DNA of 64,000 nt from Paramoeba atlantica (GCA_977017575.1 CDRNVI010000099.1:62001-126000); one strand, 5' to 3'; positions 4,273-48,319 are shown, numbered from the stretch's first letter. The notes: generated by a model not told the origin, from the sequence alone. Numbers and translations: made by a program.

Positions 4273-4339
4273 GGACCTCCACGTGGTCTTCCCTGGCACT
4301 GCTATTCCACTGATGGTACAGACACCGACCTACCGATAC
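4273..4339 (+). ncRNA. HDV-like ribozyme, 5'-truncated copy
   Basis: ACC-UCCACGU-GGU-CUUCCCU-GG(P1.1)..CCGA(J4/2)-CCUACCGAUAC; 5' P1 strand missing. Confidence 0.62.
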
Positions 4340-4391
4340 TTACCTACGTTTCTGTACTAATTTCATCCCGTACTTGACACACACTCAGCAT

Positions 4392-4457
4392 GGGGAAGTA
4401 TGGTCAGGACCTCCACGCGGTCTTCCCTGACACTGATAGTACATCACCTACCGATAC
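4392..4457 (+). ncRNA. HDV-like ribozyme, 5'-intact copy with degenerate P4/J4-2
   Basis: P1 GGGGAAG/CUUCCCU with G-U at position 1, P3 ACC/GGU, L3 UCCACGC, P2 UAUGGUCAGG/CCUACCGAUA imperfect. Confidence 0.7.
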
Positions 4458-4627
4458 TCTTATCAGTATTATTAACAATTCTTAGTAATTGTTATAGCAG
4501 TTTGTTATGGTGTTTGGTGATATTCTTCATCTATGACAATTTTGTACAAAACACGTTTGTAAGTTTTCAACAAAAACATATCCCACGTGACCCAGTGTTG
4601 CCCGTTTGGGGGTCATAAGCCAACCGG

Positions 4628-5335
4628 TCAAACAATTCGGCACTCATCCATGTCAACGAAGACACACTCTGGAATGAGAGGGCTCGTGCATGAGAGCACG
4701 CTTGGTCCACCGTGCGCTTGATCAGCCAGAAGAGTGCTGTCTGTGAAAAAGGTCTGATCCAACACAAGACCATTCGGAAGCGTTGTGAGGTCATACGTCC
4801 CGCGTAAATAGAAATTGTACTTTAAGGAGAGCGTCTTAAGACCCTGGGGGAGAGCGTCAAAGTGTAGGGCCTGTTTGAAACGGTTTAGAGCAAGTCCCAT
4901 GTGTTGCATCGTGTGTGGTACGCAACTCAAGTCCAATGTCCCGGAAAATTGGTTAGAAGTCAGGTGAAGACCGACCATTTGTCGAGGAAGAAGTTCTAAC
5001 GGGAGGGAGCCGCTTAGTTCATCGTTTTTGTACAAACTCAGGGATAAGAGGGTGGGGGGCAATCGTTCCCATATTAATGTCTCATCTTTCACTTTGTTTT
5101 TCATCCCGATATGAGACCAATCAATGTTGGTAACGCGCTGATCCGCGTCGCATTGTACTCCATACCATTGACATGCTGCAGTCGCGGTGGTGTTGAATTC
5201 CCATCCCATAGGGATGAGATACAAGGGTTCCAGAAATTGTGCAAGAAGATATTCGGGGGGAAGGCGGGGGTTGACGCGTCCAAGACGGCACGCGAATTCT
5301 TCCGAGCTCTTTGCTTCGTGTAGGGAATCTGACAT
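4628..5335 (-). CDS. LRR family protein (235 aa)
   Basis: Motif RLGRVNPRLPPEYLL, cap W..C.WYGVQC, then ~22-aa LPxxLxxLxLxxNxFSGxLDL repeats; pyrimidine-rich tract upstream of ATG. Confidence 0.9.
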   Translation of the reverse strand: MSDSLHEAKSSEEFACRLGRVNPRLPPEYLLAQFLEPLYLIPMGWEFNTTATAACQWYGVQCDADQRVTNIDWSHIGMKNKVKDETLIWERLPPTLLSLSLYKNDELSGSLPLELLPRQMVGLHLTSNQFSGTLDLSCVPHTMQHMGLALNRFKQALHFDALPQGLKTLSLKYNFYLRGTYDLTTLPNGLVLDQTFFTDSTLLADQAHGGPSVLSCTSPLIPECVFVDMDECRIV

Positions 5336-5753
5336 ACGGACCGAATTGAGAAATAGAAGGGTATTGAGATAAGTGTAGATTAGTTTGTGGTTAGTGTAAA
5401 TTAGTCCAGTAGTGGTGTGCAGGCAAAAGTAGTTGTGAATGAATGCTGAAAATACAGTACTGAAAATAGTTCGAATAACTCCGAGTTACATTTAGAGACA
5501 TATAACATAATATTGAGGATAAATCATCATGCACTTATGATACGCTTATCTTATATTCGTCCGTCCATGTAAAGTAGAAGCCCAGCTCATCGGCATGGTA
5601 ACTGATCTTCTGACTCGCCGGTACAGTCCTCAAGTCAGCGTCACTTTGTTCAAGGAGTATGGAATAAAGGTATCCCGGAAGGCGATTTTATAAAGCGAGA
5701 CGAGAATATGTAATATCATATTGTGTGCCGATCATATGTACTAGCAAAGAATC

Positions 5754-6413
5754 CTATTTGTACTGATACAGTATTTGCGCACCCTGTCCCTTTTGTATCA
5801 GTCGCTGCACCATTCCATTCCAACCTACTATCTGTGTTCGTGCAAAATTGTACTCTGCTTTCCTTGGCATCACATTTTCCTCTAATATGCCAGTAAGATC
5901 CGGATTTTTTTGCAGCATGAGCATCCGCAAATTTGGTGGCAGGGCGTGAAACTCCACTTCCCCGCTCAGCAAATTGCAGTCCAATGCGATACAATCTAAA
6001 CTTCGAGGCATACCCGCGAGGTCCACCTTACCGGTAAAACCATTTTCGCTCAAATAAAAATGTTGCAAATGTAGGGGAAGCTGTGAAAATTCAACTTCTC
6101 CGTGTATTTCATTGGATTGCACGCCGAAATACACCAAACCGGGGGGCAACGCCCACGAGAGCGTGCCTTTTAGCTGTCGCCAATCCCACCGGATCCAGTT
6201 CACTTTTTGCGCCCCATCGCACTTGATCCCCTCCCAGGAACAGAGCGCAACGGAGGGGCGCCATGTGGGATGGCTCGGGGAGAGGTTGCGTACCACGCGC
6301 TCCATAAGGTATTCCTCGGGCAGACCCGTCCCGGAGAGTTTGCCTCCGAACTCGGCACGCTGGGGAGAGGGGGAAGACTCCGATGCGGCCCACCAGTTCG
6401 GCAAGAGGTTCAT
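5754..6413 (-). CDS. LRR family protein (219 aa)
   Basis: GKLSGTGLPEEYLM motif, CSWEGIKC cap, four LRRs. Confidence 0.9.
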   Translation of the reverse strand: MNLLPNWWAASESSPSPQRAEFGGKLSGTGLPEEYLMERVVRNLSPSHPTWRPSVALCSWEGIKCDGAQKVNWIRWDWRQLKGTLSWALPPGLVYFGVQSNEIHGEVEFSQLPLHLQHFYLSENGFTGKVDLAGMPRSLDCIALDCNLLSGEVEFHALPPNLRMLMLQKNPDLTGILEENVMPRKAEYNFARTQIVGWNGMVQRLIQKGQGAQILYQYK

Positions 6414-7961
6414 GTGCAGGTTTTAGTGTACAAACGAAAAACAAGGGGAAACAAGCTCTTTTTTAGTGTGGCCAATAGCAGGAAAATGAAACCCTGCAGC
6501 GGGATAATTTTGTGTTACACACTCATCTGAGACGTATATTTTTTGTATAGTTTCTATACCTTGCTGCTTTATTTTTCTTACCTTTTACTGTATCTTAATG
6601 GCCTCACAAGCAACAAGACCGTATGCGTCGCAGGACCCTAATACGGGACCACGTGACGTGACCGAAACTACGTTGTCCGTTCCCTTGCAACAACACCCTA
6701 CATGCATAAATGATACACATCATTTATGAATACGGGAATGTGGTAAGCAGCTTAGCTGAGATATTTTTCTCCGTGTTGGTTGGGTAGTTGTTGGTCCACC
6801 TCGCCTCGGTAGAAAAACAGATCTACTGCATTGTAAACGAGAGTTAACATCTTGCGAACATCTTTCGACGTGCGTCAAGAAGGCTGGGATACGGAACCAG
6901 GGTGTGCAAGTACGTGCTGTACCCGCACGTTTAATAAGCTCTTTTTTTCTTTCCTTTTTTTTACAGATTTCAAAAATTTGTTAGCACTGATCACAAAGAT
7001 CACGAGGGCCACAAACGGTGGGTCACAAAGATCCCAAACACCCGACGAGATAACAAATAATGGGTCATTAAGATTTCAAGTGAACCGATCACAAAGATAA
7101 CAAACAAACAAACAAACAAACCAATCAGGTAATATACACATCCGATTACAAAGATCCCGTGCAATGAGTCATAAGGACTTCATAGATATCAAACAAACGA
7201 TCACAAATATCCTAAGTAAGGCGGCGAAAAGATCACAAAAAAACAGAATGGTCGTGACATTTACGATGCATGTCACATCGGAAAAGACATCGCTCAGAAC
7301 CTGTTGATGTGCTATTCCGTACATCAATAAAAGGTGAATGAAAACTAATAAAAGGTATATGAATCTTTTTTTTGTAATATGAATCAAGAAATTTACAATC
7401 AATTTATAGATAACCTTTGTCGAGGTTACCAATCTCATGCCTGCTATTCCTCAGCATACAGGATATGCTTACGTATACGTTGTATACAGGGCACAAACCG
7501 CACCACCAAATACAAAAAAAAGTGAACTTGAATATTGAAATTTAGACCTTCAACCGGCTATAAAAGACAAACAAACCGCTGTTTCGCGGTGTTTCACAAT
7601 TCTAACCCGCAGCCCCTCGAATAAGGTGCGGTACAGATTGTTTATCACGTGAATTGCGCAGCTGTTTTCACCAGAACGTTGCTGCGGAAAACTTATTCAT
7701 GGGATGGCCATGATGATAATGAAGGGGAAGGTGAAGGGGATGGCGAAGATGATAGTGAAGGGGACGAAGCGCACAAAGAACGGAATGATTAAATCAGCGA
7801 GCTCCGACTCCTGTTCTCCAATTTCGTGACAACAACACCTTTCGTGACCACACGCACGATCATTCACTTAAAACACAAAAAGAAAAAATGCAAGTTTCAT
7901 TTTCAGATTTTATTTGAAAAAAATAAGGGAACAAGGTGAAGGATAACTAAGGGGGGCATAC

Positions 7962-8215
7962 AGTATATGGAAGGCCCTCGCGAAGGGCAATTCGTATTCC
8001 TTATTGTTCCCGAAGTAGGATCAACGTTTGGCTAATAAATTTATAAATGATGCAGCTCATCACTTTAATCGGAATAACACTCGAACATGGACTATGCATT
8101 CATTGCGGCATGGGAAGGTCACTGAGCTTCGAGTCCGTGGCGTTCCTATTTCAGAGAGGCAATTAATGGGACGATGGCGCTCTCACTCGTCAGAACAATC
8201 CAATGTCACAGCGTA
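7962..8215 (+). mobile_element. Tyrosine recombinase C-terminal fragment (DIRS/VIPER/TATE type)
   Basis: LLFPK..HSLRHGKVTELRVRGVPISERQLMGRWRS; frameshifted second copy at ~15835-16075. Confidence 0.78.
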
Positions 8216-8459
8216 CCAGCGCCAACCAAGGGAGTCCAACTCTCCGTAACTAACCAGCATGTGACATCCAATGTCACAGCCTACCAGCGGGAACCAAGGG
8301 GGTCCAACTGTTCAATTAACCAGTGGCAACATGAGAGTGTTGCGGTACTTCACCATGTCTAACTGCCCTGCAGCATGCTAAGTCCAGCTCTATACGTTTC
8401 GAATGTCATCGGGAAGACCGAGACATCCAATTCAAGGTGTACAACTCGATCGAATGATC

Positions 8460-8532
8460 GCTTCCCCCTCCTACCCCGGCCTTTGATAGACCTGCCCCAG
8501 GCTTGGGACTGGAAACTGCGGAGTTAAGAAGC
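8460..8532 (-). ncRNA. Twister self-cleaving ribozyme (type P1 with P5 hairpin)
   Basis: GCUUCU-UAA-CUCC-GC-AGUUU-CCAG-UCCCAAGC-CUGG-[GGUC..GGCC]-GUAG-GAGGG-GGAAGC. P1, UAA, P2, P4, L4 UCCCAAGC, both pseudoknots and GAGGG are present; one P2 mismatch or bulge. Confidence 0.88.
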
Positions 8533-8867: not shown

Positions 8868-9764
8868 TCAATGATTCTCGAGCCTTATCTGTGTGTTATA
8901 TACGCACAAACCGTACTCTTGCACATGCTCAGGAAAGGGCGATCTTGTTATATTGCTACGCAAGTTCACATTATCTGATAAATCCAAACCCATCAATGAA
9001 GATGGAAGCTCCTCCAAGTTGACATCACCAGAAAACATATTGCGCGACAAATCAAGGTGCCGAATCCCCGAAGGAAGTTGTCGGAGATCGAGTTCGCCGG
9101 ACAACTGATTTCCAGAGAGATATACTTGACATATGTTAGGCGGAAACAAAGTCAAATCAAGTGAGCCGGTGAGACGATTTTCGCTAAGGTTCACATCTTG
9201 CATATTGACCGGCAGACTCGTCAAACACACAGTTCCATTGAATCTGTTGTCATTCAAAGTCAAATCTTCGAAACAGAGCGGAAGGGAAGTCAAGTCCAAC
9301 TCGCCTTCAAACCGATTTTCGTACAGAGTTAGTGATCGCAGTTCCGAAGGCAAGCGCGTGAGCGGTGCTGTCCCTTCTAGAGCGTTCTGACACACATTAA
9401 AATCGTACAAACTATGTGGGAGATAAATCAAGTTCATAGTACCTGACAAATCTCGTTGGGTCCATCTCACGTGGCTGACTTCTTCCCGCTCGTTACAACT
9501 CACACCTTTCCACTCGCACGCTGGCGTGTGAAGACTCCACGATTCGTCCAAGTTGTGGACTTCCGCGAGGAGACGAACGAGTAGATACTCCTGAGGTAAA
9601 TTCGCAGCGCTCACTTTAGCAATACGCGGTCTCGTCTTTGTAGTTTCTTCAGCAGAATGAGTGTTGGAAGGTATTGGGCTTTCGACTTTACGTCGTTTAG
9701 TCGACGGTTCCTGAATATCCGAACATGTGAGCCGCACGATCGTTTGTAGCGTTAAGTGTAGCAT
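8868..9764 (-). CDS. LRR family protein with KRRKV motif (298 aa), paralog A
   Basis: STKRRKVE, RIAKVSAANLPQEYLL, CEWKGVSC, ~8 LRRs; closely similar to 16649-17545 and 19602-20492. Confidence 0.92.
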   Translation of the reverse strand: MLHLTLQTIVRLTCSDIQEPSTKRRKVESPIPSNTHSAEETTKTRPRIAKVSAANLPQEYLLVRLLAEVHNLDESWSLHTPACEWKGVSCNEREEVSHVRWTQRDLSGTMNLIYLPHSLYDFNVCQNALEGTAPLTRLPSELRSLTLYENRFEGELDLTSLPLCFEDLTLNDNRFNGTVCLTSLPVNMQDVNLSENRLTGSLDLTLFPPNICQVYLSGNQLSGELDLRQLPSGIRHLDLSRNMFSGDVNLEELPSSLMGLDLSDNVNLRSNITRSPFPEHVQEYGLCVYNTQIRLENH

Positions 9765-13696: not shown

Positions 13697-13923
13697 GAAG
13701 GAGGTCAAGGAGGCCTTCAGAAACCTCCTAATCCACTACGGGTTTAATCCAAAGGTTCTCATCCAAACTATGGATCTACCAACACGCCGTCCTATCCAAA
13801 TTGCGCTTTCATTCGTTGTTCATGCCAGCCTTACTCATTCATTGAGAGGCTACAAAAGAGAACCACCCACCATATCAAGAAGTGGATGAACTTTGCCTCT
13901 GCCACCAGTATTGAAACCTTATA
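13697..13923 (+). mobile_element. Third copy of the mosaic junction fragment
   Basis: gaaggaggtcaaggaggccttcagaaacc..aaactatggatctaccaacac..; truncated by a Tc1 TIR at 13924. Confidence 0.88.
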
Positions 13924-14787: not shown

Positions 14788-16391
14788 TATAAGCTGAAGA
14801 CATACGTCTACGGGGTAAAAAGAATCCCAGAGAGTGAAGCGGATGATGAAGGAGATGATGGGGATAATGAGGGGAATGATAAAGGGGATGGAGGGTATGA
14901 CGAAGGGAACGTTGATGGGGATGATGAAGGGGACGCTGGTGGAGACATTGAAGCTAACGAGCTCCGAATCCTGCTTTCCAATTTCTTCCGTAGAACTCTA
15001 CGATCCCAACATTACATACTCCCATCATATCCCATCATTGTTCATAATCCCATCATTGTTTACCAATAAAAAACACGAGCTTTCTTTGATTGAAATTCAT
15101 AGTCAAGGTCCCGCTTCATCACAAAACGTTTTTCAAAATGTATGAAGTACCGTACTATCCGTACTAGGGAGATGTATGGGTATACTAAATTTTGTCTAAA
15201 AAGCAAAAAATAATTTATAATTATATTTAATTTATCAGTAGTTGCTAGAAAAATGTTGCCTTGACCTTAAAATGCGATTTCTTGCCGTGTGATGACTAGA
15301 AAGTGGATCTGTCGCTTCTAAAAAAGGGATGTCTCCCGCTCCTGTTGCTGGGAGGGGGGGGTAGGTATACTAAGTGGGCACGGGTATACTATCCTGGAAC
15401 ATAGTTTAGTATTAAACAAGTTTAGATAGTAGATTTTTTTACAAATTCTTTTGATTACGATTTCTCTTTCCATGACCTTTCCACCGTACGGTCGAACTGG
15501 TACGTGGCTCCGGGCTTTGGACCGGTATAGCAGGCTTAAAGGAGACCGAGGTTACCGAAAGGAAGTGGATGTTGTCACGGGGGGTATTACAGTCCATGCT
15601 GTGCATTCATCGTCAGTTAGCCCCTAGGACACACTTCATTTGCCTCGGCCTGCTATTCTCGTGAATATGAAAGTCCCGATCCAGCCACTAGTTGTTTTTC
15701 CAACGGCGGCCACTGCGCCTCCCCCCCACTAAGAAACGCGGAAAACCGGAATTATGGGATGATCATGGCGATAATGAAGGGTAAAATGAAGGGGATGGCG
15801 AAGGCGATAGTGATAGTACGGTATACAGTGGTTAATGGAAGGCCCTCGCGAAGGGCAATCCAGGTTCCTTATTGTTCTCGAAGTGGGATCGACGTTTGAC
15901 TAATAAACTATAAATGATGCAACCCACCACTTTAATTGGAATAACACTCGAACATGGACTAGGCGTTCATTGCGGCATGGGAAGGCCACTGAGCTTCGAG
16001 TCCGTGGTATTCCTATTTCAGAGAGGCAATTATTGGGACGATGGCGGTCTCACTCGTCAGAACAATCGAATGTCACAGCCTACTAGCGCCAACCACGGGA
16101 GTCCAACTCCCCGTAAATAGCCAGCATGTGACATCCAATCATTGGCAATGTCACATTGTCACATAGGCAATGTCACCGCCGACTTGCCACAACCCAAGGG
16201 AGGCCAATTCCCCATAACTAACCAGCATGTGACATCCAATGTTACTGCCTACCAGCGGGAACATGAGAGTGTTGCGGTACTTCACCATGCCTAACTGCCC
16301 TGCAGCATGCCAAGTCCAGCTCTATACGGTTCGAATGTCATCAGCAAGACTGACACATCCAATTCAAGGCGTACAACTCGATCGAATGATC

Positions 16392-16464
16392 GCTTCCCCC
16401 TCCTACCCCGGTCTTTGAGAGACCTGCCCCAGGCTTGGGACTGGAAATTGCGGAGTTAAGAAGC
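16392..16464 (-). ncRNA. Twister ribozyme, second copy
   Basis: Core identical to 8460-8532; differences only in loop or P5 positions (GGUC/GACC perfect stem; AAUUU vs AGUUU). Confidence 0.88.
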
Positions 16465-16648: not shown

Positions 16649-17545
16649 TCAATGATCCCATACATTTATCTGTGTGTTATATACGCACAAACCGAACTCT
16701 TGCATATCTTCAGCAAATGGCGATCTTGTTATGTTGCCACACAAGTCCACATTATCTGATAAGTCCAAAGTCATCAAGAAAGATGGAAGGTTCGTCAAGT
16801 CCACATCACCAGAAAACTTATTCTGCGACAAATCAAGTCGAAAAATACTTGCAGGAAGTTGCTGCAGATCGAGTTCGCCGGACAGCTGATTTCCAGAGAT
16901 ATATACTCGCGATATGTTAGGCGGAAGCAAAGTCAAATCAAGTGGCCCGGTAAGACAATTTTCGCTAATGTTAACACTTTGCATACTATCCGGCAGACTC
17001 GTCAAACACACAGTTCCATTGAACCTGTTGTGATTTAACGCCAAATCTTCGAAACAGAGCGGAAGGGAAGTCAAGTCCAACTCGCCTTCAAACCGATTTA
17101 CGTACAGAGCTAGCGATCGCAGTTCCGAAGGCAAGCGCGTGAGCGGCACTGTGCCTTCTAGCGCGTTCCCAGGCACAGCAAAATCGTACAGACTATGTGG
17201 GAGATGAACCAAGTTCATAGTACCTGACAAATCTAGTTGACCCCATTCCACGCAGCTGACTTCTTCCCGCTCGTTACAACTCACACCTTTCCACTCGCAC
17301 GCTGGCGTGTGAAGACTCCACGATTCGTCCAAGTTGTTGACTTCCGCGAGGAGACGAACGAGTAGATACTCCTGAGGTAAATTCGCAGCGCTCACTTTAG
17401 CAATACGCGATCTCGTCTTTGTAGTTTCTTCAGCAGAATGAGTGTTGAAAGGCATTGGGCTTTCGACTTTACGTCGTTTAGTCGACGGTTCCTGAATATC
17501 CGAACATGTGAGCTGCACGATCGTGCGTAGGGTTATGCGCAGCAT
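16649..17545 (-). CDS. LRR family protein with KRRKV motif (298 aa), paralog B
   Basis: Colinear with paralog A, intact frame. Confidence 0.92.
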   Translation of the reverse strand: MLRITLRTIVQLTCSDIQEPSTKRRKVESPMPFNTHSAEETTKTRSRIAKVSAANLPQEYLLVRLLAEVNNLDESWSLHTPACEWKGVSCNEREEVSCVEWGQLDLSGTMNLVHLPHSLYDFAVPGNALEGTVPLTRLPSELRSLALYVNRFEGELDLTSLPLCFEDLALNHNRFNGTVCLTSLPDSMQSVNISENCLTGPLDLTLLPPNISRVYISGNQLSGELDLQQLPASIFRLDLSQNKFSGDVDLTNLPSFLMTLDLSDNVDLCGNITRSPFAEDMQEFGLCVYNTQINVWDH

Positions 17546-19601: not shown

Positions 19602-20492
19602 TCATTTTAACCGAATCTGCGTATTATAAATGCACAAATCGAACTGTCGCACACGGACAGGCACTTGTGACCTTGTTGTATTACTACACAAGTTCCAATT
19701 ATTCGATAAATTCAAAGTCATCAATGAAGATGGAAGTTTCGCCAATTCCACATCACCAGAAAACGTATTGCGCGACAAATCAAGTTGCGAAATCTTTGAA
19801 GGAAGTTGCCGAAGATCGAGTTCGCCGGACAATTGATTTCCAGAGAGGCGTACTTGCCATATGTTAGGCGGAAGCAACGTCAAATCAAGTGGCCCGGTAA
19901 GACGATTTTCGCTAAGGTTCACATTTTGCATATTGACCGGCAGACTCGTCAAACATACAGTTCCATTGAATCTGTTGCTATGCAAAGTTAAATCTTCGAA
20001 GCAGTAAGGAAGAGAAGTCAAGTCCAACTCGCCTGCAAACCGATTTTCGTACAGAGCTAGTGATCGAAGTTCCGAAGGCAAGCACGTGAGCGGCACTGTC
20101 CCTTCTAGCGCGTTCCCAGGCGCATCAAAATAGTTCAGACTATGTGGGAGATGAACCAAGTTCATAGTGCCTGACAAATCTAGTACGGACCATCTCACGT
20201 GGCTGACTTCTTCCCGCTCCTTACAACTCACACCTTTCCACTCGCATGCTGGCATGTGAAGACTCCACGATTCGTCCAAGTTGTGGACTTCCGCGAGGAG
20301 ACGAACGAGTTGATACTCCTGAGGTAAATTCGCAGCGCTCACTTTGGCAATACACGATCTCGTCTTTGTAGTTTCTTCAGCAGAATGAGTGTTGAAAGGT
20401 ATTGGGCTTTCGACTTTACGTCGTTTAGTCGACGGTTCCTGAATATCCGAACATGTGAGCCGCACGATCGTGCGTAGGGTTAAGCGCAGCAT
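19602..20492 (-). CDS. LRR family protein with KRRKV motif (296 aa), paralog C
   Basis: Colinear with paralogs A and B, intact frame. Confidence 0.92.
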   Translation of the reverse strand: MLRLTLRTIVRLTCSDIQEPSTKRRKVESPIPFNTHSAEETTKTRSCIAKVSAANLPQEYQLVRLLAEVHNLDESWSLHMPACEWKGVSCKEREEVSHVRWSVLDLSGTMNLVHLPHSLNYFDAPGNALEGTVPLTCLPSELRSLALYENRFAGELDLTSLPYCFEDLTLHSNRFNGTVCLTSLPVNMQNVNLSENRLTGPLDLTLLPPNIWQVRLSGNQLSGELDLRQLPSKISQLDLSRNTFSGDVELAKLPSSLMTLNLSNNWNLCSNTTRSQVPVRVRQFDLCIYNTQIRLK

Positions 20493-21309: not shown

Positions 21310-21794
21310 AGCAGCTAAATGAACAATTTAAACATTGCTCGCTAATCTATTCATTTTATAGTGTTGGTCTAGATACAATCTAGATTGTCGTTAGTCTACT
21401 GGAACAGTAGCGGAGGTATGCCTCCGTGATGTTGGCCTTTAAACCGAGACACCCGCTAGAAGACATGCCAATTGGTGCAAAAAAATGCACAGTGACTGGA
21501 AGGAAGTAATAGGAACAGTGGAGCACAAGGAAGAATATCTTGCTATAAAAGATAAAATGTATGATCATGTAGACAAGATGAAACGTTAACATCTGAGAGA
21601 ATCAGGGTATTAATATTGTCATAACGCATCCAACACTCAAGGTGTGACACACAAGGACCGGAAGAACGAGTTGACGATGCGTGCGAATTATTTAAAGAAT
21701 ACCACGTATTAATTTTACCGTATTGGACACATGTTGTACAACTTCCTAACTTTTTATCAGAGCTTGATTCTCCGCCTTGATGTGGCGCTCTGAC

Positions 21795-22350
21795 TTAACA
21801 CCCCTTTCGAGCATAACGCCGAGTGCATGCAGGCCAAGGCCAAATGTGTCCTGCAAGGCCTACCTCAAGGCCAGTCGGCTAAAGATCAGCGACGCAACCT
21901 TTGCGAGGCGGCCCTAGGGAAAGCCCCGCCCACCACGCAACTGGTCTGCATGCGGCAGATTCAGAACGTTCATTCCACAAAGTGGATGAACGCGTGGCCC
22001 AACTGGCCAGAGTACTACATGCGGGACCCGCAGTGGGAGACTGCGGCCCGTCTCCGGTACTTGGTCGCCCGTACCTCGGAGCCTGAGCTCCAGTGCGTGT
22101 GCGGTGCAACCTCCCGCAATGAGGAGTTTTGCGGACACGCACTGGATTGCAAGAAGGTTAAGGGGAAAACCCAGGCCTCCCGCCACAAGGAGGTCAAGGA
22201 GGCCTTCAGAAACCTCCTAATCCACTACGGGTTTAATCCAAAGGTAGGTTTAATCCAAAGGTTCTCATCCAAACTATGGATCTACCAACACGCCGTCCTA
22301 TCCAAATTGCGCTTTCAATCGTTGTTCATGCCAGCCTTACTCATTCATTG
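21795..22350 (+). mobile_element. Partial duplicate of the mosaic retroelement junction region
   Basis: Near-identical to ~24257-24812 (MQAKAKCVLQG..KLWIYQH). Confidence 0.9.
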
Positions 22351-22391
22351 AGAATATCATTCATTTTTGGAGGGCTCTATGCGCAAACTGA

Positions 22392-22586
22392 GTGTGTTGT
22401 TCTACCTGCACAGGATTCCCTGTACAAGGAACAACACACCATTATCTCGGCGTAGTAAACACGCCTTTGCTTGCCTGGCACAGTGATTGCCGGAAAATAA
22501 TATTTTTTTTTCCGGTTCATTTCACTGCCCAAGCTGCTTCCCACTTAAGGGGCTTGTCCCCACAACTGAGTGATCTCCCCGGCAAC
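22392..22586 (+). ncRNA. Conserved structured RNA motif, copy A (upstream of RT ORF)
   Basis: 11-bp stem GUGUGUUGUUC/GAACAACACAC, then CAUUAUCUCGGCGUAGUAAACACGCC and further hairpins shared with 46585-46706 and 48119-48319. Confidence 0.65.
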
Positions 22587-22623: not shown

Positions 22624-22952
22624 GGGAGTCACGAATGACCTCGGAGGCAGATGACTACCTCCGGAGCGTGCACCCTCGGGACACGGAGTCTACAAGAAGA
22701 CCTCGAATACCATACCAAACATGATTCAGAACACATGCCCGAGGGGAGGGAGTCACGAATGACCTCGGAGGCAGATGACTACCTCCGGAGCGTGCACCCT
22801 CGGGACACGGAGTCTTCGAAGACCTCGAATACCATACCAAACATGATTCAGAACACATGCCCGAGGGGAGGGAGTCACGAATGACCTCGGAGGCAGATGA
22901 CTACCTCCGGAGCGTGCACCCTCGGGACACGGAGTCTTCGAAGACCTCGAAT
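22624..22952 (+). repeat. Tandem repeat, 2.7 x 122-124 bp, in retroelement 5' region
   Basis: gggagtcacgaatgacc starts at 22624, 22748, 22870. Confidence 0.95.
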
Positions 22953-25356
22953 TTGATTATTAATAGAGGGCTGCGCAGTATGTCGTGGACCGGTATCTAG
23001 CGTGTTTATGGAGCTGTGATAATGTACGGTATTCAATGTCCCGCATGGAGAGAGTACGTGCTAAGTGTATGCCACGACTTCCTAGGGAAATCTGAACAGG
23101 GAAGATAGAGACGGCTTGGAATCTCCTTCTAGCTGTTAAGCGCTTCCTTTTCTTCCCGGAGGACAAGCTATCGCAAAGACAGCTTGCACGCGAACTACGC
23201 ATGCGAGCTCACCTTGAGGGCTCAGAAACCTCGGCCCCGACCACCCCCAACCCGGCCAACGGCTCCCCTATGTCGGCGGTCAAACGCGCGACGGAACTGA
23301 TTAGAGCAGAAGCTTTCTCGAGAGCCGCCAAAATTCTGGAGGCACCGCTCGACCCACCGGCCAATCCCGCGGCAGCCCTTGCACAAGCCAAACGACTTCA
23401 TCCTTCTGAGGGACCCTACACCACGGGGAAATATCTCTACGATAAGGACCGACACGGGTCCCTGCCTTCCCTTGCGGATGTAGCTAGAAAGGCCCAAAGC
23501 CTGGCACCGCTTCGCGCCCCAGGCCCGACAGGGTGGACTAAAGAACTCGTAACCCCAGTTCTAATGGACAACGGTCCACGTGACACAGTCACGTGGACCA
23601 TACATGGAATACTAACCAACTCTCTCCGTCCCTCGATGCGCGAGCTGCTTACGGGGGCATCGTTGAAACTATTTACCAAGCCGGGCGCCCCAGCTGGACA
23701 TCACTCCTCGTACCGCCCCATAGCGATGGGGGAATGCCTTCTGAAGGTCGCCGGTCTTCTGGCCCTGGAGAAAGTGAGAGAACACCTCCCCACATTCTTC
23801 CAAGGACTCCAGTTCGGAGCACAATACACCCAAGGGTGTGAACATATTATACACAGTGTCCGAAAGCACTTCCGGGACAGGCCCGATGAAATCATAGTGG
23901 CTGCGGACCTGGAAAATGCTTTCAATATCTCGCGGTCTGTCATCTTCCGGGCCCTGGAGGGGGACCCGAAGCTACTCCCTCTGGAGGGTATCACCCTCTT
24001 TAGCTACGGGAAGGCTAGCTCTCTTCACTTGGGGGAAGGTACATCTATTATAAGTTCCAGAGGGGTTAAGCAAGGTGATCCTATGGCTCCTATCCTATTC
24101 GCCATAGGGATACACGGGGCCATAGCCAAAGTGGCTGCTAAATTCCCTGGAACCCTCAAAGTCTGGGCGTCTCTGGATAATGTTACCTTTGCAGGGGAGC
24201 CCAAGGTGTGCGGGGCGGCCCTGGAGGCAATGCAAGGGGAGATTAAGTCACTAGGGCTTAACATCCCTTTTGAGCATAAGGCCGAGGGCATGCAGGCCAA
24301 GGCCAAATGTGTCCTGCAAGGCCTACCTCAAGGCCAGTCGACTAAAGATCAGCGTCGCTCCCTCTGCGAGGCGGCCCTACTGAAAGGCCCATCCACCACG
24401 CAACTGGTCTGCATGCGGCAGATTCAGAACGTTCATTCCACAAAGTGGATGAATGCGTGGCCCAACCGGCCGGAGTACTACATGTGGGACCCGCAGTGGG
24501 AGACTACGGCCCGTCTCCGGTACTTGGTCGCCCGTACCTCGGAGCCTGAGCTCCAGTGCGTGTGCGGTGCAACCCTCCGCAACGAGGAGTTTTGCGTACA
24601 CGCACTGGATTGTAAGAAGGTTAAGGGGAAAACCCAGGCCTCCCGCCACAAGGAGGTCAAGGAGGCCTTCAGAAACCTCCTAATCCACTACGCGTCTAAT
24701 CCAAAGGTAGGTTTAATCCAAAGGTTCTCATCCAAACTATGGATCTACCAACATGCCGTCCTATCCGAATTGCGCTTTCAATTCGTTGTTCATGCTAGCC
24801 TTACTCATTCAGTGAGAGGCTACAAAAGAGAGCCACCCACCATATCAAGAAGTGGATGAACTTTGCCTCTGCCACCAGTACTGAAAGCTTATATACCTCA
24901 CGCGGATGGAATCTTACAAGCGCATCGCAATTATGGCACCTTTGGACCGGGGAAGCTCTTTGCCATATGCAAAGTTCTTGTGACCCGAATGTGCTACAAT
25001 CCCTCCGCTCCCGAATAGAGGAAGAGAAGAATGTACCCCGCCGAGGCTTGATAAGACCAGCAACTTATACTCTTGATGATCTTGCAGATTTCAACCGAGT
25101 CAAGGACATCCTACGCAAACAGTATGAAACGAACACGTTACAGAAACTGAAAAAACGGGCCCCAATAAGTTCAAAATGGTGGGTCCTACCGGTTGATCCT
25201 GACACAGCTAAACATTTTGCGGCAGCGATAAACGGAATAAAGAACTATAAGCTTTCCCGATTTGCAGCATCGATTATGACCCTGACACCTCTCCCCTCCT
25301 GCGCCGCTCTCCGCAGATGGGGAATATCATCACACTCAAATACGACGTGCCCCATA

Positions 25357-26883: not shown

Positions 26884-27817
26884 ATGTTCTAGAGAAATAC
26901 AAACACCGCGTCACGTCCTCTCCTCCTCTACCGTATCCTTGGAACAAGGACGATACTCCTATCGACATAATCTGCTGCTTCAAGAGCTCGCGACTCATCT
27001 CCTAAAGTTTCCGTACACTTCGAAAGCCAACTTTGACATTCCGGGACTGCGCAACCCCCCGGACTGGATGGTAAACGATCTATCATTGTTGCGGCCAGAT
27101 GGCTGGGTGCAACTCAAGAATGTATGCGAATACATTATCGATTTTTTTTGTCATCCCCCGAGCCCATTAGCGCACGCCCCTACAGTACCATTTTTGTACC
27201 AGAGTCCCGGGGCCGGGGACACCGTACGTGGTGAGGACCAAAGGGAAAAAATATTAATTATCGAACTCACAATACCTTGGGAAGAGAACCTCGCTGAGGC
27301 GCATCGGCGCAAACGAAACAAATACAGCCAGTTAATGTTCAAGCGTCGTGCAGAAAAAGTACCCTGCTGTTCGATAGTTTTTGAAATAGGAGCGTGTTTA
27401 ATGCCTAACACGACCTCCTCACGAGTCAGTGTCCCATTCCATGGGGAAGAAGAGGCATCTTCCTGTGTACAGCACATGATCCGAAGTGCAATCTTCGGGA
27501 GTTATGTGATCTGGACGCGGCGCGAGGACCCCGCATGGTCCGATGAACCACGCGAAGAATGATTAGACTTTCGGTAGACACGTTGTATGCGTGCTAACCG
27601 AATTAAATTCTCTTCCGGCTCGCCCGGTATGAAACGGAAATGGAGGTAGGCGTCCTACGCTCCCATTCATCCAACCTCTGCCCGCTGCGTGGGTGCATAC
27701 AGGGCTGTAAAGAAGGACGAAAAGTTTGCACAAGCGCTATTTGATTTGCGAATAACCAATGACCGTATCGAATGTGAGACCCCCTTTAGCGTATCAAATG
27801 CGCGTGATATAAATTTA

Positions 27818-39705: not shown

Positions 39706-40066
39706 CAGGGGTGCGAATCTAAAGGTGGGGGGGTCCAAAATTCGTAGAAGTTGTCCAATTTTGGAAAAAAATAGCGCATTGGATAGCTTTTACAGAGTTG
39801 TATGTTTTAGGATAGGTAGCTTCCGAGGTTTGGGGGTACCCGCCTTCGTGTAAGGGTCAAAAACACATATTGTAATACTTTAGTGATGTCAATAATTTCT
39901 GTAATTTGGATTGCAAAAGACAATTAGTAACCACAGTGCCCCCCGTTCCGACTAATAACAATTTCACAACGCTTCCTGAAACTCTTCAACGTTTTCTGAA
40001 CCGTTGCAGAGTGGGTCTGTTTCAATTTAAGGAAAGACCCCTCAATGGCGGCTTCCAGTTGCTGTC
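39706..40066 (-). mobile_element. Truncated second copy of the DD32E Tc1 element (right end)
   Basis: TA|CAGGGGTGCGAATCT; encodes ..KRCEIVISRNGGHCGY as in 25541-26662. Confidence 0.9.
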
Positions 40067-41151: not shown

Positions 41152-41171
41152 GAAGTCAAAATATAAAAGGA

Positions 41172-42788
41172 ATGTACAGTAATGTATCCAGAGAGCTGAA
41201 CTACAGTAGAGATACAGCTGTATCTGTGTACAGCTCTCTGAAAACAAGACAAAACCACAGTGCAGTTCAAGGTGTCCCCACCCCAGTAACTAAAATGCAA
41301 AGAAATCATGATATGTTAATTTTTGGTTGAGCTTGAAATTGGTTGGAGCCGAATTGGCAATCCGTGGTTGAGAACTGTGCGATTTCTTCTTCCTTCATCA
41401 TCGGCCTTCATAGAAATTGCTCGTCGTACTTTTGTAAACCGTACGCGAGCTGGGAAAAGGGTGGTGTCGAAAATTTCAACGGCGTCGTCAGAGATTTCTA
41501 CCCAAAGTCTCATCCTTTCAGTAATATATCCCAAGCAGACCTTGATTCCGTATCCAGTAATACCAATGCTCGACCGAAAGTGGTGCTCCAAGACCAGTCC
41601 CCATCTGAGTTTGTGCAAAAATTACGGAAAATTCGACCGCAAATTCTCTTGGACAGCTCGCAGGAACCTTAAATCTCTTTTCGTGTGCGTGGGCTTCTTC
41701 CTTCAAATATTGTGTTATAAAACACTAATTTCCTATGAAACTGCGCGGGCCTTGTTTGTATTGGATATTTGCATTTCGTGTGCGTTCTTGCATAGAATGT
41801 CGTTTTCTTTACGTGTATGGGCATCAAAAGGTCTTGGCTTTATTACGGGTTGGGTATGGTGGAAAAGTTGGGCTCAGTCAGAAAAGTTGGGCTTCAGTCG
41901 TCTTGGCTTTGTAAGGGATTGGGTATGATGGAAAAATTGGGCTACGCAAATTGCTTCCCACTAACGACACACATTTTTGTCTTGCAGACGGGTAAACAAA
42001 GTCTTGGCTTTTCTAGGGGTCGGGTATGATGGAAAAGTTGGGCTTCGCAAATTGCTTCCCACTAACGTCAGACTCAGTGGCCCGGCCGGCCCCTCCGTGC
42101 GTTCGGCCTCTTATATTCCCCAAAACAACTACCACCTTCCGCCCATTTATCAGGGGTCGCTCGCGCGACCCCCGCTAAATAGGGGGGGAAGGTGGTAGTT
42201 GTGGGGTATGGAGGCCTCTCGCAACTCCGGGGCCTCACCGGGAGCAGGAATGAAATACTAGCGCTCTTTAACTTGTTTCTCCCCTCCACTTTTTTTCTTT
42301 TTAACTTATTTCCCCCCCTCCACTTTTTTTCATGGGGTCGATTTTTTTTTCGAGGGGGGGTCACTTTTTTTGAGGGGCTCGCAAAAAATATGCATTAAGG
42401 GTGCGAGTTTTTATGCATTATCAGTGGGACAATATGCATTATCAGTGGGACAATATGCGTTATCAGGGTGCATTATGCAGTATAAGGGTGCGAGATTTAT
42501 GCGTTATAAGGGTGCGAGTTTTATGCGTTATAAAGGTGCGAGTGGCATGTACAGTAATGTATCCAGAGAGTTGAACTACAGTAGAGATACAGCTGTATCT
42601 GTGTACAGCTCTCTGAAAACAAGACAAAACCACAGTGCAGTTCAAGGTGTCCCCACCCCAGTAACTAAAATGCAAAGAAATCATGATATGTTAATTTTTG
42701 GTTGAGCTTGAAATTGGTTGGAGCCGAATTGGCAATCCGTGGTTGAGAACTGTGCGATTTCTTCTTCCTTCAGCATCGGCCTTCATAG
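41172..42788 (+). repeat. 242-bp direct repeats (41172-41413, 42547-42788) bracketing the IS30-like fragment
   Basis: Near-identical sequence at both positions. Confidence 0.9.
41427..41672 (+). mobile_element. IS30-like transposase C-terminal fragment
   Basis: YFCKPYASWEKGGVENFNGVVRDFYPK..N.RPK..L...SPSE matches the IS30 YF..P...W.KG..EN.NG..R...PK..N.RPR....P signature. Confidence 0.78.
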
Positions 42789-43000
42789 AACGAGGAGGTA
42801 ATCAACGTGAAGGGAACATTGTGAAGGTGCTGTTTTGTGTGATTTTTCGTGAGAACTTCAAACAAAACAGTACCTCCACAATGTTCCCTTCACGTTGAAG
42901 ATTACCTCCTCGTTCTATGAAGGCCGATGAAGAAGGAAGAAGAAATCGCACAGTTCTCAACCACGGATTGCCAATTCGGCTACAACCAATTTCAAGCTCA
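42703..43000. repeat. ~300-bp near-perfect palindrome (foldback)
   Basis: ~140-bp arms, short central loop; left arm also present at ~41328-41413. Confidence 0.93.
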
Positions 43001-44401: not shown

Positions 44402-45077
44402 TCCCGATGGTGAGTAGGGCTGTCCAATTCGAAATTTAAGCTACAACTTTGTAAATTAGCTGTGCAATGTAGTACCCCATAATGCCCCAGGTGTAGATCA
44501 ATGCCCTAGGGTAGTAAATCCATCTTAGCAAATCTCTCATTCAGCTTATTCAACTTACAGTATAGCCTTAATGTACAGTAAAGTACTTACAGCACAGTAC
44601 TTACAGTACAACCTTAATGTACTACAAACTTGCAGGCTTAATGTACTAGCGATGGTTCTCCTCATTATAAATCTTCTATTCTTCACATTATAAATATTAT
44701 TTACTTAGTATCTATGGAGATTATGTAGACAGTAGTTGGAGGTCGCTGACAGTCGCTGGCGATGGCTGACAGTCGCTGGAAGTCACTGGAAGTCACTGGA
44801 GGTCAGGATAACTAGAAATAGGACGAAGTCAACTGAAGTGAGGGGTGAAGCGTTGGAGTTCAACCCAGTTAATTTTGTTTTTGAAATGAGAATTCATATT
44901 TGACCCAAAAGAGGATCTGTCAAAGTTCAACACCTTGTTCTGATAGTAGTTTTGTCATGCAGGGCAAGACCGCCAGAGATATTTAGGGCCAGCAGGGGTA
45001 GGCACAATCAACGCTCCCTGCTGGACCTCTTCGCCTTCCGTGGGGACGCAGTGAAGGGCGCGGGATATCGAGTGATA

Positions 45078-45160
45078 CTTCATTATCACTCCTTCGTAAA
45101 CACGCTTGTTACCGGTCCCAAGCCCGGCACCGCCATATTCGGCGGAGTGTGAGGGTGAAG
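45078..45160 (+). ncRNA. Twister ribozyme, distinct family
   Basis: CUUCA-UUAU-CACUCC..GCUU..CCGG-UCCCAAGC-CCGG-[CGCC AUAUUC GGCG]-GAGUG-U-GAGGG-UGAAG; 4-bp GCUU/AAGC pseudoknot; L1 is UUAU rather than canonical UAA. Confidence 0.8.
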
Positions 45161-45318
45161 ATTTCAATACATCTATAGCACGATTATAAACTAAATATAA
45201 TTGAACTACTTGTTTCTAGTATCCAGTAGAACTACTACATTTAGCTCCATTTACCTAAACAATCTTACACGCCTGAAAATGTCACGCATCAATTCGCTTG
45301 GTCCCGGCCTGGCAGTAC

Positions 45319-46566
45319 TTCATCCTCTGTAACGAGGCCCATGGGCTCCGTACCCTTCGGGTATCACCGCCCCAGCATTCGTGCTGCGAGGCCCATGGGC
45401 TCCGTGTCCTTCGGGGCACACTTGCCGTTGCATTTATATATTCATCCTCTGTAACGAGGCCCATGGGCTCCGCACCCTTCGGGGTACCACCGCCCCAGCA
45501 TTCGTGCTGGGAGGCCCATGGGCTCCGTGTCCTTCGGGGCACACTTGCCGTTGCATTTATATATTCATCCTCTGTAACGAGGCCCATGGGCTCCGCACCC
45601 TTCGGGGTACCACCGCCCCAGCATTCGTGCTGGGAGGCCCATGGGCTCCGTGTCCTTCGGGACACACTTGCCGTTGCATTTATATATTCATCCTCTGTAA
45701 CGAGGCCCATGGGCTCCGTACCCTTCGGGGTACCACCGCCCCAGCATTCGTGTTGGGAGGCCCATGGGCTCCGTGTCCTTCGGGACACACTTGCCGTTGC
45801 ATTTATATATTCATCCTCTGTAACGAGGCCCATGGGCTCCGTACCCTTCGGGGTACCACCGCCCCAGCATTCGTGTTGGGAGGCCCATGGGCTCCGTGTC
45901 CTTCGGGACACACTTGCCGTTGCATTTATATATTCATCCTCTGTAACGAGGCCCATGGGCTCCGTACCCTTCGGGGTACCACCGCCCCAGCATTCGTGTT
46001 GGGAGGCCCATGGGCTCCGTGTCCTTCGGGACACACTTGCCGTTGCATTTATATATTCATCCTCTGTAACGAGGCCCATGGGCTCCGTACCCTTCGGGGT
46101 ACCACCGCCCCAGCATTCGTGTTGGGAGGCCCATGGGCTCCGTGTCCTTCGGGACACACTTGCCGTTGCATTTATATATTCATCCTCTGTAACGAGGCCC
46201 ATGGGCTCCGTACTCTTCGGGGTACCACCGCCCCAGCATTCGTGCTGGGAGGCCCATGGGCTCCGTGTCCTTCGGGACACACTTGCCGTTGCATTTATTC
46301 CTCTGTAACGAGGCCCATGGGCTCCGTACCCTTCGGGGTACCACCGCCCCAGCATTCGTGTTGGGAGGCCCATGGGCTCCGTGTCCTTCGGGACACACTT
46401 GCCGTTGCATTTATATATTCATCCTCTGTAACGAGGCCCATGGGCTCCGTACTCTTCGGGGTACCACCGCCCCAGCATTCGTGCTGGGAGGCCCATGGGC
46501 TCCGTGTCCTTCGGGACACACTTGCCGTTGCATTTATTCCTCTGTAACGAGGCCCATGGGCTCCGT
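45319..46566 (+). repeat. Tandem array, 10 full units plus a partial unit, ~123 bp, three TTCG-loop hairpins per unit
   Basis: Unit starts at 45319, 45441, 45564, 45687, 45810, 45933, 46056, 46179, ~46295, 46418, ~46534; two units carry a 7-bp deletion. Confidence 0.97.
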
Positions 46567-46584
46567 CACTCCTACGAAGGAGTG

Positions 46585-46706
46585 ATAATGAGGGGGTTGC
46601 TATGCCCTGTCCATGGTATCATGTTCAGGGGAACAGCAACTCCCCATTATCTCGGCGTAGTAAACACGCCTTGGCTTGCCTGGCACTACGATTGCCGAAA
46701 AAAAAA
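46585..46706 (+). ncRNA. Conserved structured RNA motif, copy B (3'-truncated at an A-run)
   Basis: AUAAUGAGGGGGUUGCU/AGCAACUCCCCAUUAU stem plus conserved core. Confidence 0.6.
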
Positions 46707-46767
46707 CTTAGTTCCTTAATCCTCACTTGAGGCATGGTAACGGGAGTCCTCCCCCCTAAGAAGATTT

Positions 46768-47030
46768 GAAGTTGAAAAATATGGAGTGTTCGGGGGAGAG
46801 AAAACAAAGGGGGAGACTATTGTTGGTGCGTTATAGATCCCCCCATATGGAAGTATCGAGGCACACCGGACGTCTCGGGTTGACGCTCGAAATACGAATA
46901 TGAAGTTGAAAAATATGGAGTGTTCGGGGGAGAGAAAACAAAGGGGGGGAGTATTGTTGGTGCGTTATAGATCCCCCCATACGGAAGTATCGAGGCACAC
47001 ACCGGACGTCTCGGGTTGACGCTCGGAATA
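46768..47030 (+). repeat. Two ~133-bp direct repeats
   Basis: gaagttgaaaaatatggagtgttcggggg.. occurs twice. Confidence 0.9.
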
Positions 47031-47209
47031 CGGCTTTTCAGGGTATCTCGCCTAGTAGGAATATTGAATCAGAAATTCAGACCGACGATAGTGAACGCGT
47101 TAGTGCTTATTCGGTGGAGAAAAAAAAGAAAACTAGAAAAAAAAAGCAAACGGTTGCTTTGCTTGATGCATTTATACCCGATTTCTTTGTTAACGAAGAT
47201 TCATCATAA

Positions 47210-47875
47210 ATGCTGAAGGAACAACTTGGATTCTTTACATCAACACACCTAAAACATGGTTTACCATGGGGTATCAAATGTTGCACGGCATTGAAAAGTA
47301 CCCAAAATTTTATTGAATGGATAAATTGTCCCCCTTTTCACGGGAAAATAAGGAAACTATCCTCCGGGGTTTGGTTACAACATTTATTAGAACTCGTGGA
47401 ATGCGGGGTGCTACGTGTGGCACACGACTCTCGATCATCATCACGTTTATATTTACGTTACTTTGAGGCATCAAAAGGGGAGGAATTGTCAAGAAGTATT
47501 GCGGATGGAACACCACTAAATGAGATGTGCAATCGCCCTCCTGGCTTGAATTTTCCAGCTATTGCTGAAATTATCCATGTAATAGAGAATTTCCCCAACG
47601 TAAACTTTTTATCCGCTGATATGCGACACTGGTTTCACCAGAGTGAAATACCATCAGAATCGGGGCGTACATCAGTTAGGAGATCGATGTGTAATGAGAT
47701 CACGGAAATGGATGAACAGATAGGGAAACATGGACATTCTTTTCGAATTTTCCATATTAAATCTAAAGAAAACCCAGCGGACGGGTTGACTCGAGAAGGG
47801 CATAATTATGACATAAAAGAAGCACTCCTGAACTCAGCTCTAAGAGCTGGCGATGTACATGTAGACCCTATGTAA
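47210..47875 (+). mobile_element. DIRS/VIPER/TATE-like RT plus RNase H remnant, internally deleted
   Basis: RSIADGTPLNEMC..PP....P..ADMRHWFHQ (RT), joined to HIKSKENPADGLTR (RNase H end). Confidence 0.72.
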
Positions 47876-48118
47876 GAATTATAGAAAGCGTAACTGGAGG
47901 AAACAAACACACGAATCTAGAGTAATTAGTAAAATTTATGAGTGGATAGCATGAGGAATGGCAAAGAAAGTAAATCCCCCCCAAAAGAAAAAACGTTAAC
48001 CAAAGGTTTACGCCAACCCTTTGTTCTATTGCACTCAAAGTTTTCTACTCCATTATGCAGTAAAATTTCCTTCGTATTTCTTCTTCCGAAAATTTTCTCG
48101 ACGCATGAGTAAAACCGT

Positions 48119-48319
48119 GCTGCCGGGGAGATCACTCGGTTGTGGGAGCGGGCCCCTTAAGTGGGAAGCGACTGGGCTGCGAAATGAACCGAAAATATAT
48201 TTTTTTCGGCAATCGTAGTGCCAGGCAAGCCAAGGCGTGTTTACTACGCCGAGATAATGGGGAGTTGCTGTTCCCCTGAACATGATACCATGGACAGGGC
48301 ATAGCAACTCCCTCATTAT
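48119..48319 (-). ncRNA. Conserved structured RNA motif, copy C
   Basis: Near-identical to copy B at the 5' end and colinear with copy A at the 3' end. Confidence 0.65.

Follow-up and report, generated by a model that had tools for sequence, protein, structure and literature searches.

Does a leucine-rich repeat (LRR) gene array in a kinetoplastid genome carry self-cleaving ribozymes, and if so, to what kind of element do they belong? [quoted passage not shown] The stretch in question, hereafter the window, is a 64,000-nt piece of DNA deposited under Paramoeba atlantica (GCA_977017575.1 CDRNVI010000099.1:62001-126000). An earlier note on it had proposed three twister ribozymes, two hepatitis delta virus (HDV)-like ribozyme cores, and repeat-bearing retro-RNAs that excise themselves from LRR transcripts. 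The explanation I prefer is that the window is an LRR gene array with two twister loci, that the twister named Tw3 lies in a terminal module of an order-DIRS retroelement, and that it serves RNA processing. As a whole, I give this explanation a probability of roughly 40%.

A full twister descriptor (P1, UAA, P2, GC, linker, a 4-bp P4 closing UCCCAAGC, linker, P2′, GAGGG, and P1′) matches exactly three sites in the window, named Tw1 (8462-8530, minus strand), Tw2 (16394-16462, minus strand), and Tw3 (45093-45159, plus strand), and has no match in 300 simulated 64-kb windows. A permissive Rfam scan of the window gave twister-P1 at Tw2 (30.7 bits, E = 0.013) and Tw1 (29.7 bits, E = 0.024), both E-values being window-wide and already multiplied by 4227 families, and a weak twister match at about 45.1 kb (Tw3). 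These three matches are the sole ribozyme signals of that scan. In a local search, Tw3 aligns end to end with twister-P1 (28.2 bits), every modelled pair being canonical. The covariance model (CM) alignments of the sites span the whole twister-P1 model with the conserved letters of L1, L2, and L4. In all three, the UAA L1 loop that contains the cleavage site (U-A) is directly 3′ of P1 (TTCG|TAA in Tw3; TTCT|TAA in Tw1 and Tw2), and L4 GUCCCAAGC, the L2 GC, and the L1 GAGGG are exact, permitting the pseudoknots T1 and T2. Since the descriptor found three matches in the window and none in the 300 simulations, the twister part of the earlier observation is, at the level of the motif, real and not a product of chance, and the three motifs stand where the note had put them.

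Are there more of them in this genome? The window segment 14898-27550 is 99.93% identical to one contig of the ENA assembly ERZ24900291. Thus, another 194 kb of the same genome was sampled from contigs of that assembly (the sister contigs, numbered with an L), much of it LRR arrays, which makes 258 kb in total. The scans were done with the descriptor and relaxed motifs rather than with a covariance model of the three sites, as MAFFT set the cleavage site one column off. No further intact twister was found in the additional 194 kb, which leaves only three in 258 kb, and the enrichment of intact twisters across LRR arrays that the note would predict was not seen.

Tw3 is the best of the three and reads as a twister motif of textbook quality; it is very probably a twister. 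With a P0 hairpin (45070-45091), it occupies 45070-45159 of the plus strand and is composed of P1 (CUUCG/UGAAG), P2 (ACAC/GUGU), the L2 GC, P4 (CCGG/CCGG closing the L4 loop), P5 (CCGCC/GGCGG), and the L1 GAGGG. P1, P2, and P4 are all formed. When Tw3 is folded with its flanks (45066-45163), the minimum free energy structure is the twister fold with P0 (z = -3.58). Cleavage is predicted between U45097 and A45098. The strand of Tw3 is antisense to the LRR genes.

Tw1 and Tw2 are plausible twisters but less certain ones. Tw1 lies 337 nt past the stop codon of an LRR open reading frame (ORF; 8868-9764, minus strand), and Tw2 lies 186 nt downstream of another (16649-17545, minus strand). Tw1, whose cleavage is predicted between 8526 and 8525 (for Tw2, between 16458 and 16457), has no P3 and has a P5-like hairpin; Tw2 is also present in the independent contig L002, at 99.93% identity. 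The two differ at 3 of 69 nt and lie in a segmental duplication that extends without a break from the LRR gene past the twister for about another 620 nt, with 96% identity in the twister and 87% in the neighbouring LRR coding region. As far as sequence tells, they are a second twister lineage copied together with an LRR gene. Tw1 and Tw2 being one duplicated locus, the three occurrences once taken as independent are reduced to two independent loci, both of the rare architecture without P3 and with P5. Downstream of Tw1 is a non-coding block (7967-8461, minus strand) in which a stretch of about 65 nt is loosely repeated; the block is about 92-94% identical, indels aside, to its copy at 15835-16393. 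Tandem Repeats Finder reported no tandem repeats after Tw1 or Tw2, even at a score of 30. Thus, the recurring layout of twister, spacer, and tandem repeats that the note had described holds for Tw3 and not for the other two. No boundaries of a mobile element were seen at Tw1 or Tw2, the homology passing upstream of the cleavage site into the LRR gene; no inverted partner was found for either, and neither DIRS coding remnants nor mobile-element hallmarks are present nearby. A third LRR paralogue (19602-20492) and a relative in L001, uninformative because its homology ends mid-gene, are without the twister region. A hammerhead-like CUGACGAG...GAAA downstream of Tw1 was rejected, as its stem II does not fit the register and it has no Rfam match.

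To what does Tw3 belong? It is followed on the plus strand by an AT-rich spacer, read from the sequence (45160-45318), and by a hairpin-rich tandem array of 10.3 copies of 123 bp (45319-46566) with UUCG-type loops and no real ORF. Beyond the array lie two inverted arms of 120 nt that are 99% identical by alignment, at 46585-46704 (plus strand) and 48319-48200 (minus strand). The left arm is made up of a long hairpin (z = -5.6), a conserved core CATTATCTCGGCGTAGTAAACACGCCTTGGCTTGCCTGGCAC that looks like a vestigial 5′ half of a twister, and an A-run. Between the arms, ORF221 (47210-47875, plus strand) is a deleted reverse transcriptase (RT)/RNase H (RH) ORF identified by tblastn and by its homologues, 175 in number, the full-length ones being RT and RNase H proteins (RVT_1, RVT_3, and RT_RNaseH). 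The motif NPADGLTR gave the early idea of a DIRS element; Pfam and BLASTP seemed to speak against it, and an exhaustive protein search revived it. The nearest full-length relative is a retroelement of 5.2 kb at L012:1390-6599, in which a 329-aa ORF1, a 299-aa tyrosine recombinase (YR) ORF, and a 567-aa RT/RH ORF lie between inverted terminal repeats (ITRs) of 119 nt (1390-1508 and 6599-6481, inverted, 98% identical). The YR ORF (3216-4115) has weak profile matches to Phage_int_SAM_4 (E = 0.001) and XerA (E = 0.14), and three catalytic motifs, ALRSCE, HTLRH, and RHY, can be read in it; a single-sequence AlphaFold model of the recombinase was unusable (pLDDT 34.5). Since ORF221 consists of residues 52-183 joined to residues 499-566 of the L012 RT/RH protein, the window copy, which has also lost the YR ORF, reads as a non-autonomous deletion derivative of an order-DIRS retroelement. 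In all likelihood, the arms beside the 123-bp array are ITRs of such an element.

The order of the ORFs, with ORF1 in the Gag-like position before YR and RT/RH, is that of the kinetoplastid VIPER and TATE elements (PMC6681497). The ITRs are shared with DIRS-like elements, the absence of target-site duplications is shared with order-DIRS elements, and the deletion derivatives are comparable to SIRE. In contrast to DIRS-like elements, no internal complementary region was detected, only chance matches of 8-13 nt being found in the L012 and window copies. The repeats are inverted, whereas split direct repeats are reported for VIPER-like elements (PMC6681497), and the ITRs differ from those of known order-DIRS elements in carrying a core that appears to derive from a twister.

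This core connects Tw3 with the element. Seven ITR copies are available: a pair each in the window, in L004, and in L012, and a single one in a relic at 22 kb of the window. The relic (22432-22584, plus strand), composed of the core and adjoining internal sequence, is 85% identical to 48267-48121 and adjoins a 122-bp array. All seven copies have a long hairpin, then the core CATTATC.CGGCGTAGTA.ACACGCCTTGGC..GCCTGGCAC, and then an A-run, and the hairpin stems differ between the subfamilies with their pairing kept. The core aligns with the 5′ half of Tw3 (P1-5′, UAA, P2-5′, and GC) with a similarity above all 500 shuffles (z about 5-6), and L4 and the entire 3′ strand of the twister are missing from it in 7/7 copies. 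The 5′ flank of Tw3 is likewise homologous to the ITR core (z about 6). In L004, a degenerate, nearly full twister abuts the left ITR and reads outward from it, with 89% identity to Tw3 over 46 nt. At 46573-46590 of the window, the left-ITR flank is homologous to this pseudo-twister up to precisely the predicted U|A cleavage position, the point at which the 123-bp array begins. Furthermore, a 347-nt unit at L008:11379-11725 is bounded by a 39-nt inverted repeat and has a twister-like relic at its end; the left arm of the repeat is the 5′ part of the twister-like sequence, in which L4 (UCCAAAGC) and L1 are altered. The alignments indicate that Tw3 is an ITR-like terminal module retaining the whole ribozyme, and that it belongs to the terminal-repeat module of a YR retroelement rather than to an HDV-assisted system of the LINE type. 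The earlier idea that a twister is tied to a non-autonomous retroelement thus survives for Tw3, but the partner is an order-DIRS element, with ITRs, YR, and RT/RH, and not a non-LTR element of the R2, RTE, or L1Tc type.

In what genome does this take place? The spliced leader (SL) mini-exon of this genome, TACAGTTTCTGTACCTTGTTG|GTAC, was found from the Perkinsela SL primer in PMC5601477. Four sister loci (L003:14372-14943, L005:103-674, L007:12397-12968, and L012:13445-14021, the last on the minus strand) each carry an SL RNA unit of about 572 nt, the units being 96-98% alike, and the window has one diverged SL RNA fragment (50530-50649, minus strand). All of the LRR ORFs of the window (13/13) are on the minus strand; they have plant-type LRRNT_2 domains, and their relatives are MMETSP transcripts of Paramoeba and LRR proteins of Perkinsela. 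The P. atlantica transcript protein P0124 maps to the genome at 97-99% without introns. In the published Perkinsela genome, the genes are without introns and strand polarity is seen; ingi/L1Tc-like elements are present, as are more than 500 SL fragments and 462 or more LRR genes, and transcription is described as polycistronic (PMC5601477). Because the SL mini-exons, the intronless one-strand genes, and the hundreds of LRR genes fit, the source of the window is identified by sequence as the nuclear genome of a kinetoplastid that resembles Perkinsela and is an endosymbiont of Paramoeba, close to P. atlantica. The note's picture of a kinetoplastid with one-strand gene arrays was therefore right, and the window is an LRR gene array riddled with transposons.

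With no gene-specific promoters in this genome, the elements would be transcribed by read-through. Tw3 may then cut co-transcriptionally at U45097|A45098, and the cleavage would free a downstream RNA with a 5′-OH end that consists of the spacer, the array of 123-nt hairpin units, and the deleted element. Because Tw3 is antisense to the LRR genes, it cannot excise from an LRR polycistron; that polycistron would not be its target, and the released RNA would come from whichever transcript runs into Tw3. Tw1 and Tw2, if active, would cut the LRR gene apart from the 0.6-kb structured non-coding stretch that follows it in the polycistronic precursor. There are precedents for such processing: twister variants serve 5′ processing for Perere-3 (PMC8501958), and HDV-like ribozymes free R2 and L1Tc RNA from read-through transcripts. 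I propose the 5′-processing role of the twister tentatively, with the odds somewhat against it. The evolutionary form of the proposal is unlikely as it stands: a YR (order DIRS) lineage in an endosymbiotic kinetoplastid would carry a terminal-repeat twister and use it, or have used it, to free its RNA from read-through, and the vestigial ITR halves would record a gain and then a loss.

Several observations weigh against the preferred explanation. At gathering thresholds, Rfam has no match anywhere in the window, the twister-P1 scores of 28.2-30.7 bits lying below the gathering score of 67.2. These scores are low because all three sites are without P3 and have an inserted hairpin at the P5 position; according to a review, 78% of annotated twisters have P3 and about 1% have P5, and both are optional. 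The adenines of the consensus L2 3′ strand (GUAAA) are reduced to one A after P5 in Tw3 and replaced by GGG in Tw1 and Tw2, while an environmental P5-type twister (L061) has AA at these positions. A metagenome scan for P5-type twisters gave 119 stretches, of which two are full twisters and none is related to this genome, so that no relatives for a covariation test were found; among the contigs returned, two microbial ones stem from human-gut metagenomes and were scanned by descriptor and BLAST like the others. In Tw1 and Tw2, P1 and P4 have 4/4 pairs but P2 has 3/4 with one C.U mismatch in the canonical register, so the formation of all three helices is marginal; an alternative register exists, and thermodynamic folding gave no signal (z = -0.44 for Tw1). 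For Tw3, a competing fold appears when more upstream context is included. The L004 copy of the array and element has no intact twister. In the full-length, young-looking L012 element, both ITRs have vestigial twisters only; thus, its subfamily does not need an intact ribozyme, which makes a general role at present less likely and leaves a fossil reading alive. Lastly, there was no boundary, target-site, or 3′-end sign that an RNA starting at the cleavage site is reverse-transcribed.

In that fossil reading, which is unlikely but the most serious of the alternatives, the twisters are evolutionary leftovers, decaying and idle fossils of old retroelement terminal modules among which Tw3 is the least decayed. 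Most copies are indeed dead, as seen in the seven truncated ITR cores, the degenerate L004 twister, and the altered L4 and L1 of L008; the intact motifs in the 258 kb are just the three, and the L012 element, which has no whole ribozyme, functions or at any rate appears intact. Decay of this kind fits poorly with Tw3, in which all conserved positions and helices are kept over about 67 nt; this would be unlikely without a recent origin or selection. Moreover, the ITR cores have the same deletion state in two subfamilies with a similarity of about 80%, which suggests that they are conserved and not decaying at random.

It is improbable that Tw1 and Tw2 are host cis-regulatory ribozymes without any mobile element, which would cut the LRR pre-mRNA or polycistron past the coding region and thereby tune expression or end read-through. 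Their sense orientation, their position 186-337 nt past the stop codon, the higher identity between the duplicates in the twister (96%) than in the LRR coding region (87%), and the lack of mobile-element hallmarks or DIRS coding remnants nearby would suit such a role. However, the flanks are conserved as much as the ribozyme, the third paralogue and the L001 relative do without the twister region, and P2 has its mismatch. In addition, Perkinsela untranslated regions (UTRs) average less than 100 nt (PMC5601477), which probably places the ribozyme beyond the mature mRNA.

The model of the earlier note fares slightly worse and is quite improbable. In it, the twisters head LINE-dependent, non-autonomous retro-RNAs that are cut from LRR polycistrons, mobilised by a non-LTR RT, and thereby aid the LRR expansion. 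In its favour, the abundance of non-LTR elements and of SL-RNA retrocopies means that RT acts on cellular RNAs in this genome; the Tw3 unit (at 48313) and the ITR relic (22-23 kb) both have non-LTR fragments next to them; Tw1 and Tw2 lie on the sense strand of the LRR genes and were copied along with one of them; and the Perere-3 twister variants offer a precedent. On the other side, the non-LTR elements begin with a different sequence. Three of them open with the SL mini-exon (window 37085, minus strand; L007:746, plus strand; L009:6716, minus strand), a few dozen nucleotides upstream of the first ORF; the window element runs from 37085 to 33532 on the minus strand, with the mini-exon at 37085-37065, 36 nt before its first ORF. 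Because these elements begin with the mini-exon, their 5′ ends come from trans-splicing, and the copies descend from trans-spliced mRNAs. Another non-LTR copy (23023-25389, plus strand), with an RT ORF at 23201-24859 (RVT_1; nearest PDB relatives R2 and LINE-1) and an ORF at 24856-25389, resumes at 26795-27562 past a Tc1/mariner insertion and has no ribozyme at its head. Its RT paralogues are homologous to it only from about 23023, a point in the middle of the ORF of the longer L009 paralogue; therefore, the window copy is 5′-truncated, and the array and motif upstream are flank. Upstream of four RT paralogue loci, each on a different contig, there is neither a twister nor an arm nor an array. 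The candidate in which a twister and array form the native 5′ UTR of the 22-25-kb element was dropped for the same reason. Downstream in the Tw3 unit, the only non-LTR coding sequence found is a C-terminal ORF fragment (48313-48665, plus strand; tblastn, 39-68% identity to the ORF at 26795-27562), which abuts the right ITR and thus lies past the order-DIRS element. The ribozyme does not mark the 5′ boundary of the non-LTR copies: the Tw1/Tw2 homology runs on upstream, the RT paralogues have no twister, and the SL sits at the 5′ ends. Retro-RNAs that excise from LRR polycistrons find no support either, Tw3 being antisense, and Tw1 and Tw2 being sense but without element boundaries or dispersed copies in the 194 kb.

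The same model had drawn on two HDV-like cores, which were not recovered. The HDV-family models have no match at E ≤ 10 over the whole window, and a nested-pseudoknot descriptor of HDV found nothing within the range of the earlier finding and one AT-rich site outside it, at 61005. The most permissive local scan gave drz-Agam-1 at 4254-4322 with 14.5 bits, against a gathering score of 37. The cores are probably the direct repeat GGACCTCCACG(T/C)GGTCTTCCCTG at 4273 and 4408 (4254-4436, plus strand), which is unsupported as an HDV-like candidate and whose second copy, at 4408, has no drz-Agam-1 match.

Chance matches are hardly credible: every CM score is below the Rfam gathering threshold, but the empty simulations, the family-corrected E-values, and the related decayed copies elsewhere in the genome all contradict them.

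Returning to the preferred explanation, an order-DIRS module with a processing twister, how does it compare with known ribozyme systems? The sites share with the twister class (Rfam RF03160 twister-P1, clan CL00120) the UAA cleavage loop by P1, P2, P4, the L4 sequence, the L2 GC, and the L1 GAGGG; they differ in the absence of P3, the presence of P5, the reduced or absent L2 3′ adenines, and scores of 28-31 bits versus 67.2. The P2 5′ strand of Tw1 and Tw2, CUCC, is common to Schistosoma mansoni twisters. As in the Perere-3 (RTE) twister variants of S. mansoni (PMC8501958), for which 5′ processing of a co-transcript was proposed, a twister heads a retroelement-derived unit; the partner here is a YR order-DIRS element with ITRs and not an RTE element, no target-site duplication contributes to P1, and most copies of the module are vestigial. 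The HDV-like ribozymes of R2, RTE, and L1Tc/ingi follow the same logic, in which RNA is freed from read-through in a polycistronic genome, but belong to another ribozyme class, and in the ingi/L1Tc-like elements here the SL mini-exon stands at the 5′ end instead. Hammerhead-bearing retrozymes and Penelope-like elements are likewise non-autonomous, ribozyme-bearing repeats with structured non-coding RNA. However, their hammerheads lie in direct repeats that give circular RNAs, whereas here a single intact twister is combined with inverted repeats. A pair of ribozymes flanking the unit in direct orientation was not found, each locus having one intact twister; the left ITR is in direct orientation to Tw3, and its twister is vestigial.

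In the literature searched, twisters are tied to non-LTR elements in Schistosoma only, with none in kinetoplastids, and no ribozyme is tied to YR retroelements. If true, this would be, as far as the searchable literature shows, the first report of a twister from Euglenozoa, and likewise of a self-cleaving ribozyme linked to a YR retroelement. Mobile elements in promoterless kinetoplastid units would have two ways to defined RNA ends, SL capture for non-LTR elements and possibly a twister for the YR module. The predicted RNA ends are exact and testable with existing Paramoeba transcriptome material. The element itself represents an undescribed YR retroelement family in Perkinsela-like genomes, which combines ITRs with the ORF order of VIPER and in which no internal complementary region was detected; Perkinsela was not part of the kinetoplastid VIPER/TATE survey (PMC6681497).

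The tandem arrays that the note described are both real: besides the 123-bp array downstream of Tw3, there is an array of 2.7 copies of 122 bp at 22624-22952 (plus strand). Their supposed relationship did not hold up, as the 122-bp unit resembles the 123-bp unit no more closely than shuffled sequence does. A search with the pseudo-ORF of the 123-bp array found no other arrays by that route, and its second copy, in L004 (2809-4351), has no twister upstream. The motif said to covary beside both arrays is a genuine homology, that between the ITR relic and 48267-48121. Covariation was not found in it (term -0.76 kcal/mol); among these close copies the pairs are invariant or broken, and the motif appears to be conserved repeat sequence. 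An SL-RNA origin of the arms, arrays, and twister elements was discarded, since BLAST gave no similarity.

Around the ITR relic, further fragments of the same non-LTR RT ORF are present at 21794-22353 (matching 24257-24817) and 13698-13923, with 94% and 90% identity, which seem to point to local duplication or rearrangement there. The insertion in the neighbouring non-LTR copy is an open 373-aa Tc1/mariner transposase ORF (25541-26662, plus strand; HTH_Tnp_Tc3_2 and DDE_3), of which a fragment with 96% identity lies in inverted orientation at about 39.9 kb (39708-40066). A near-perfect palindrome of 298 nt (42703-43000) with a 247-nt direct repeat on either side (41169-41415 and 42544-42790) looks like a miniature inverted-repeat transposable element; its 59.5-bit match to MIR5998 reflects merely the long hairpin. 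Finally, two sequences resembling C/D-box small nucleolar RNAs (55894-55955 and 61712-61760, both minus strand), with sub-threshold matches to snoMe28S-Am982 of 29.6-29.7 bits, sit within a 140-nt repeat on the gene strand.

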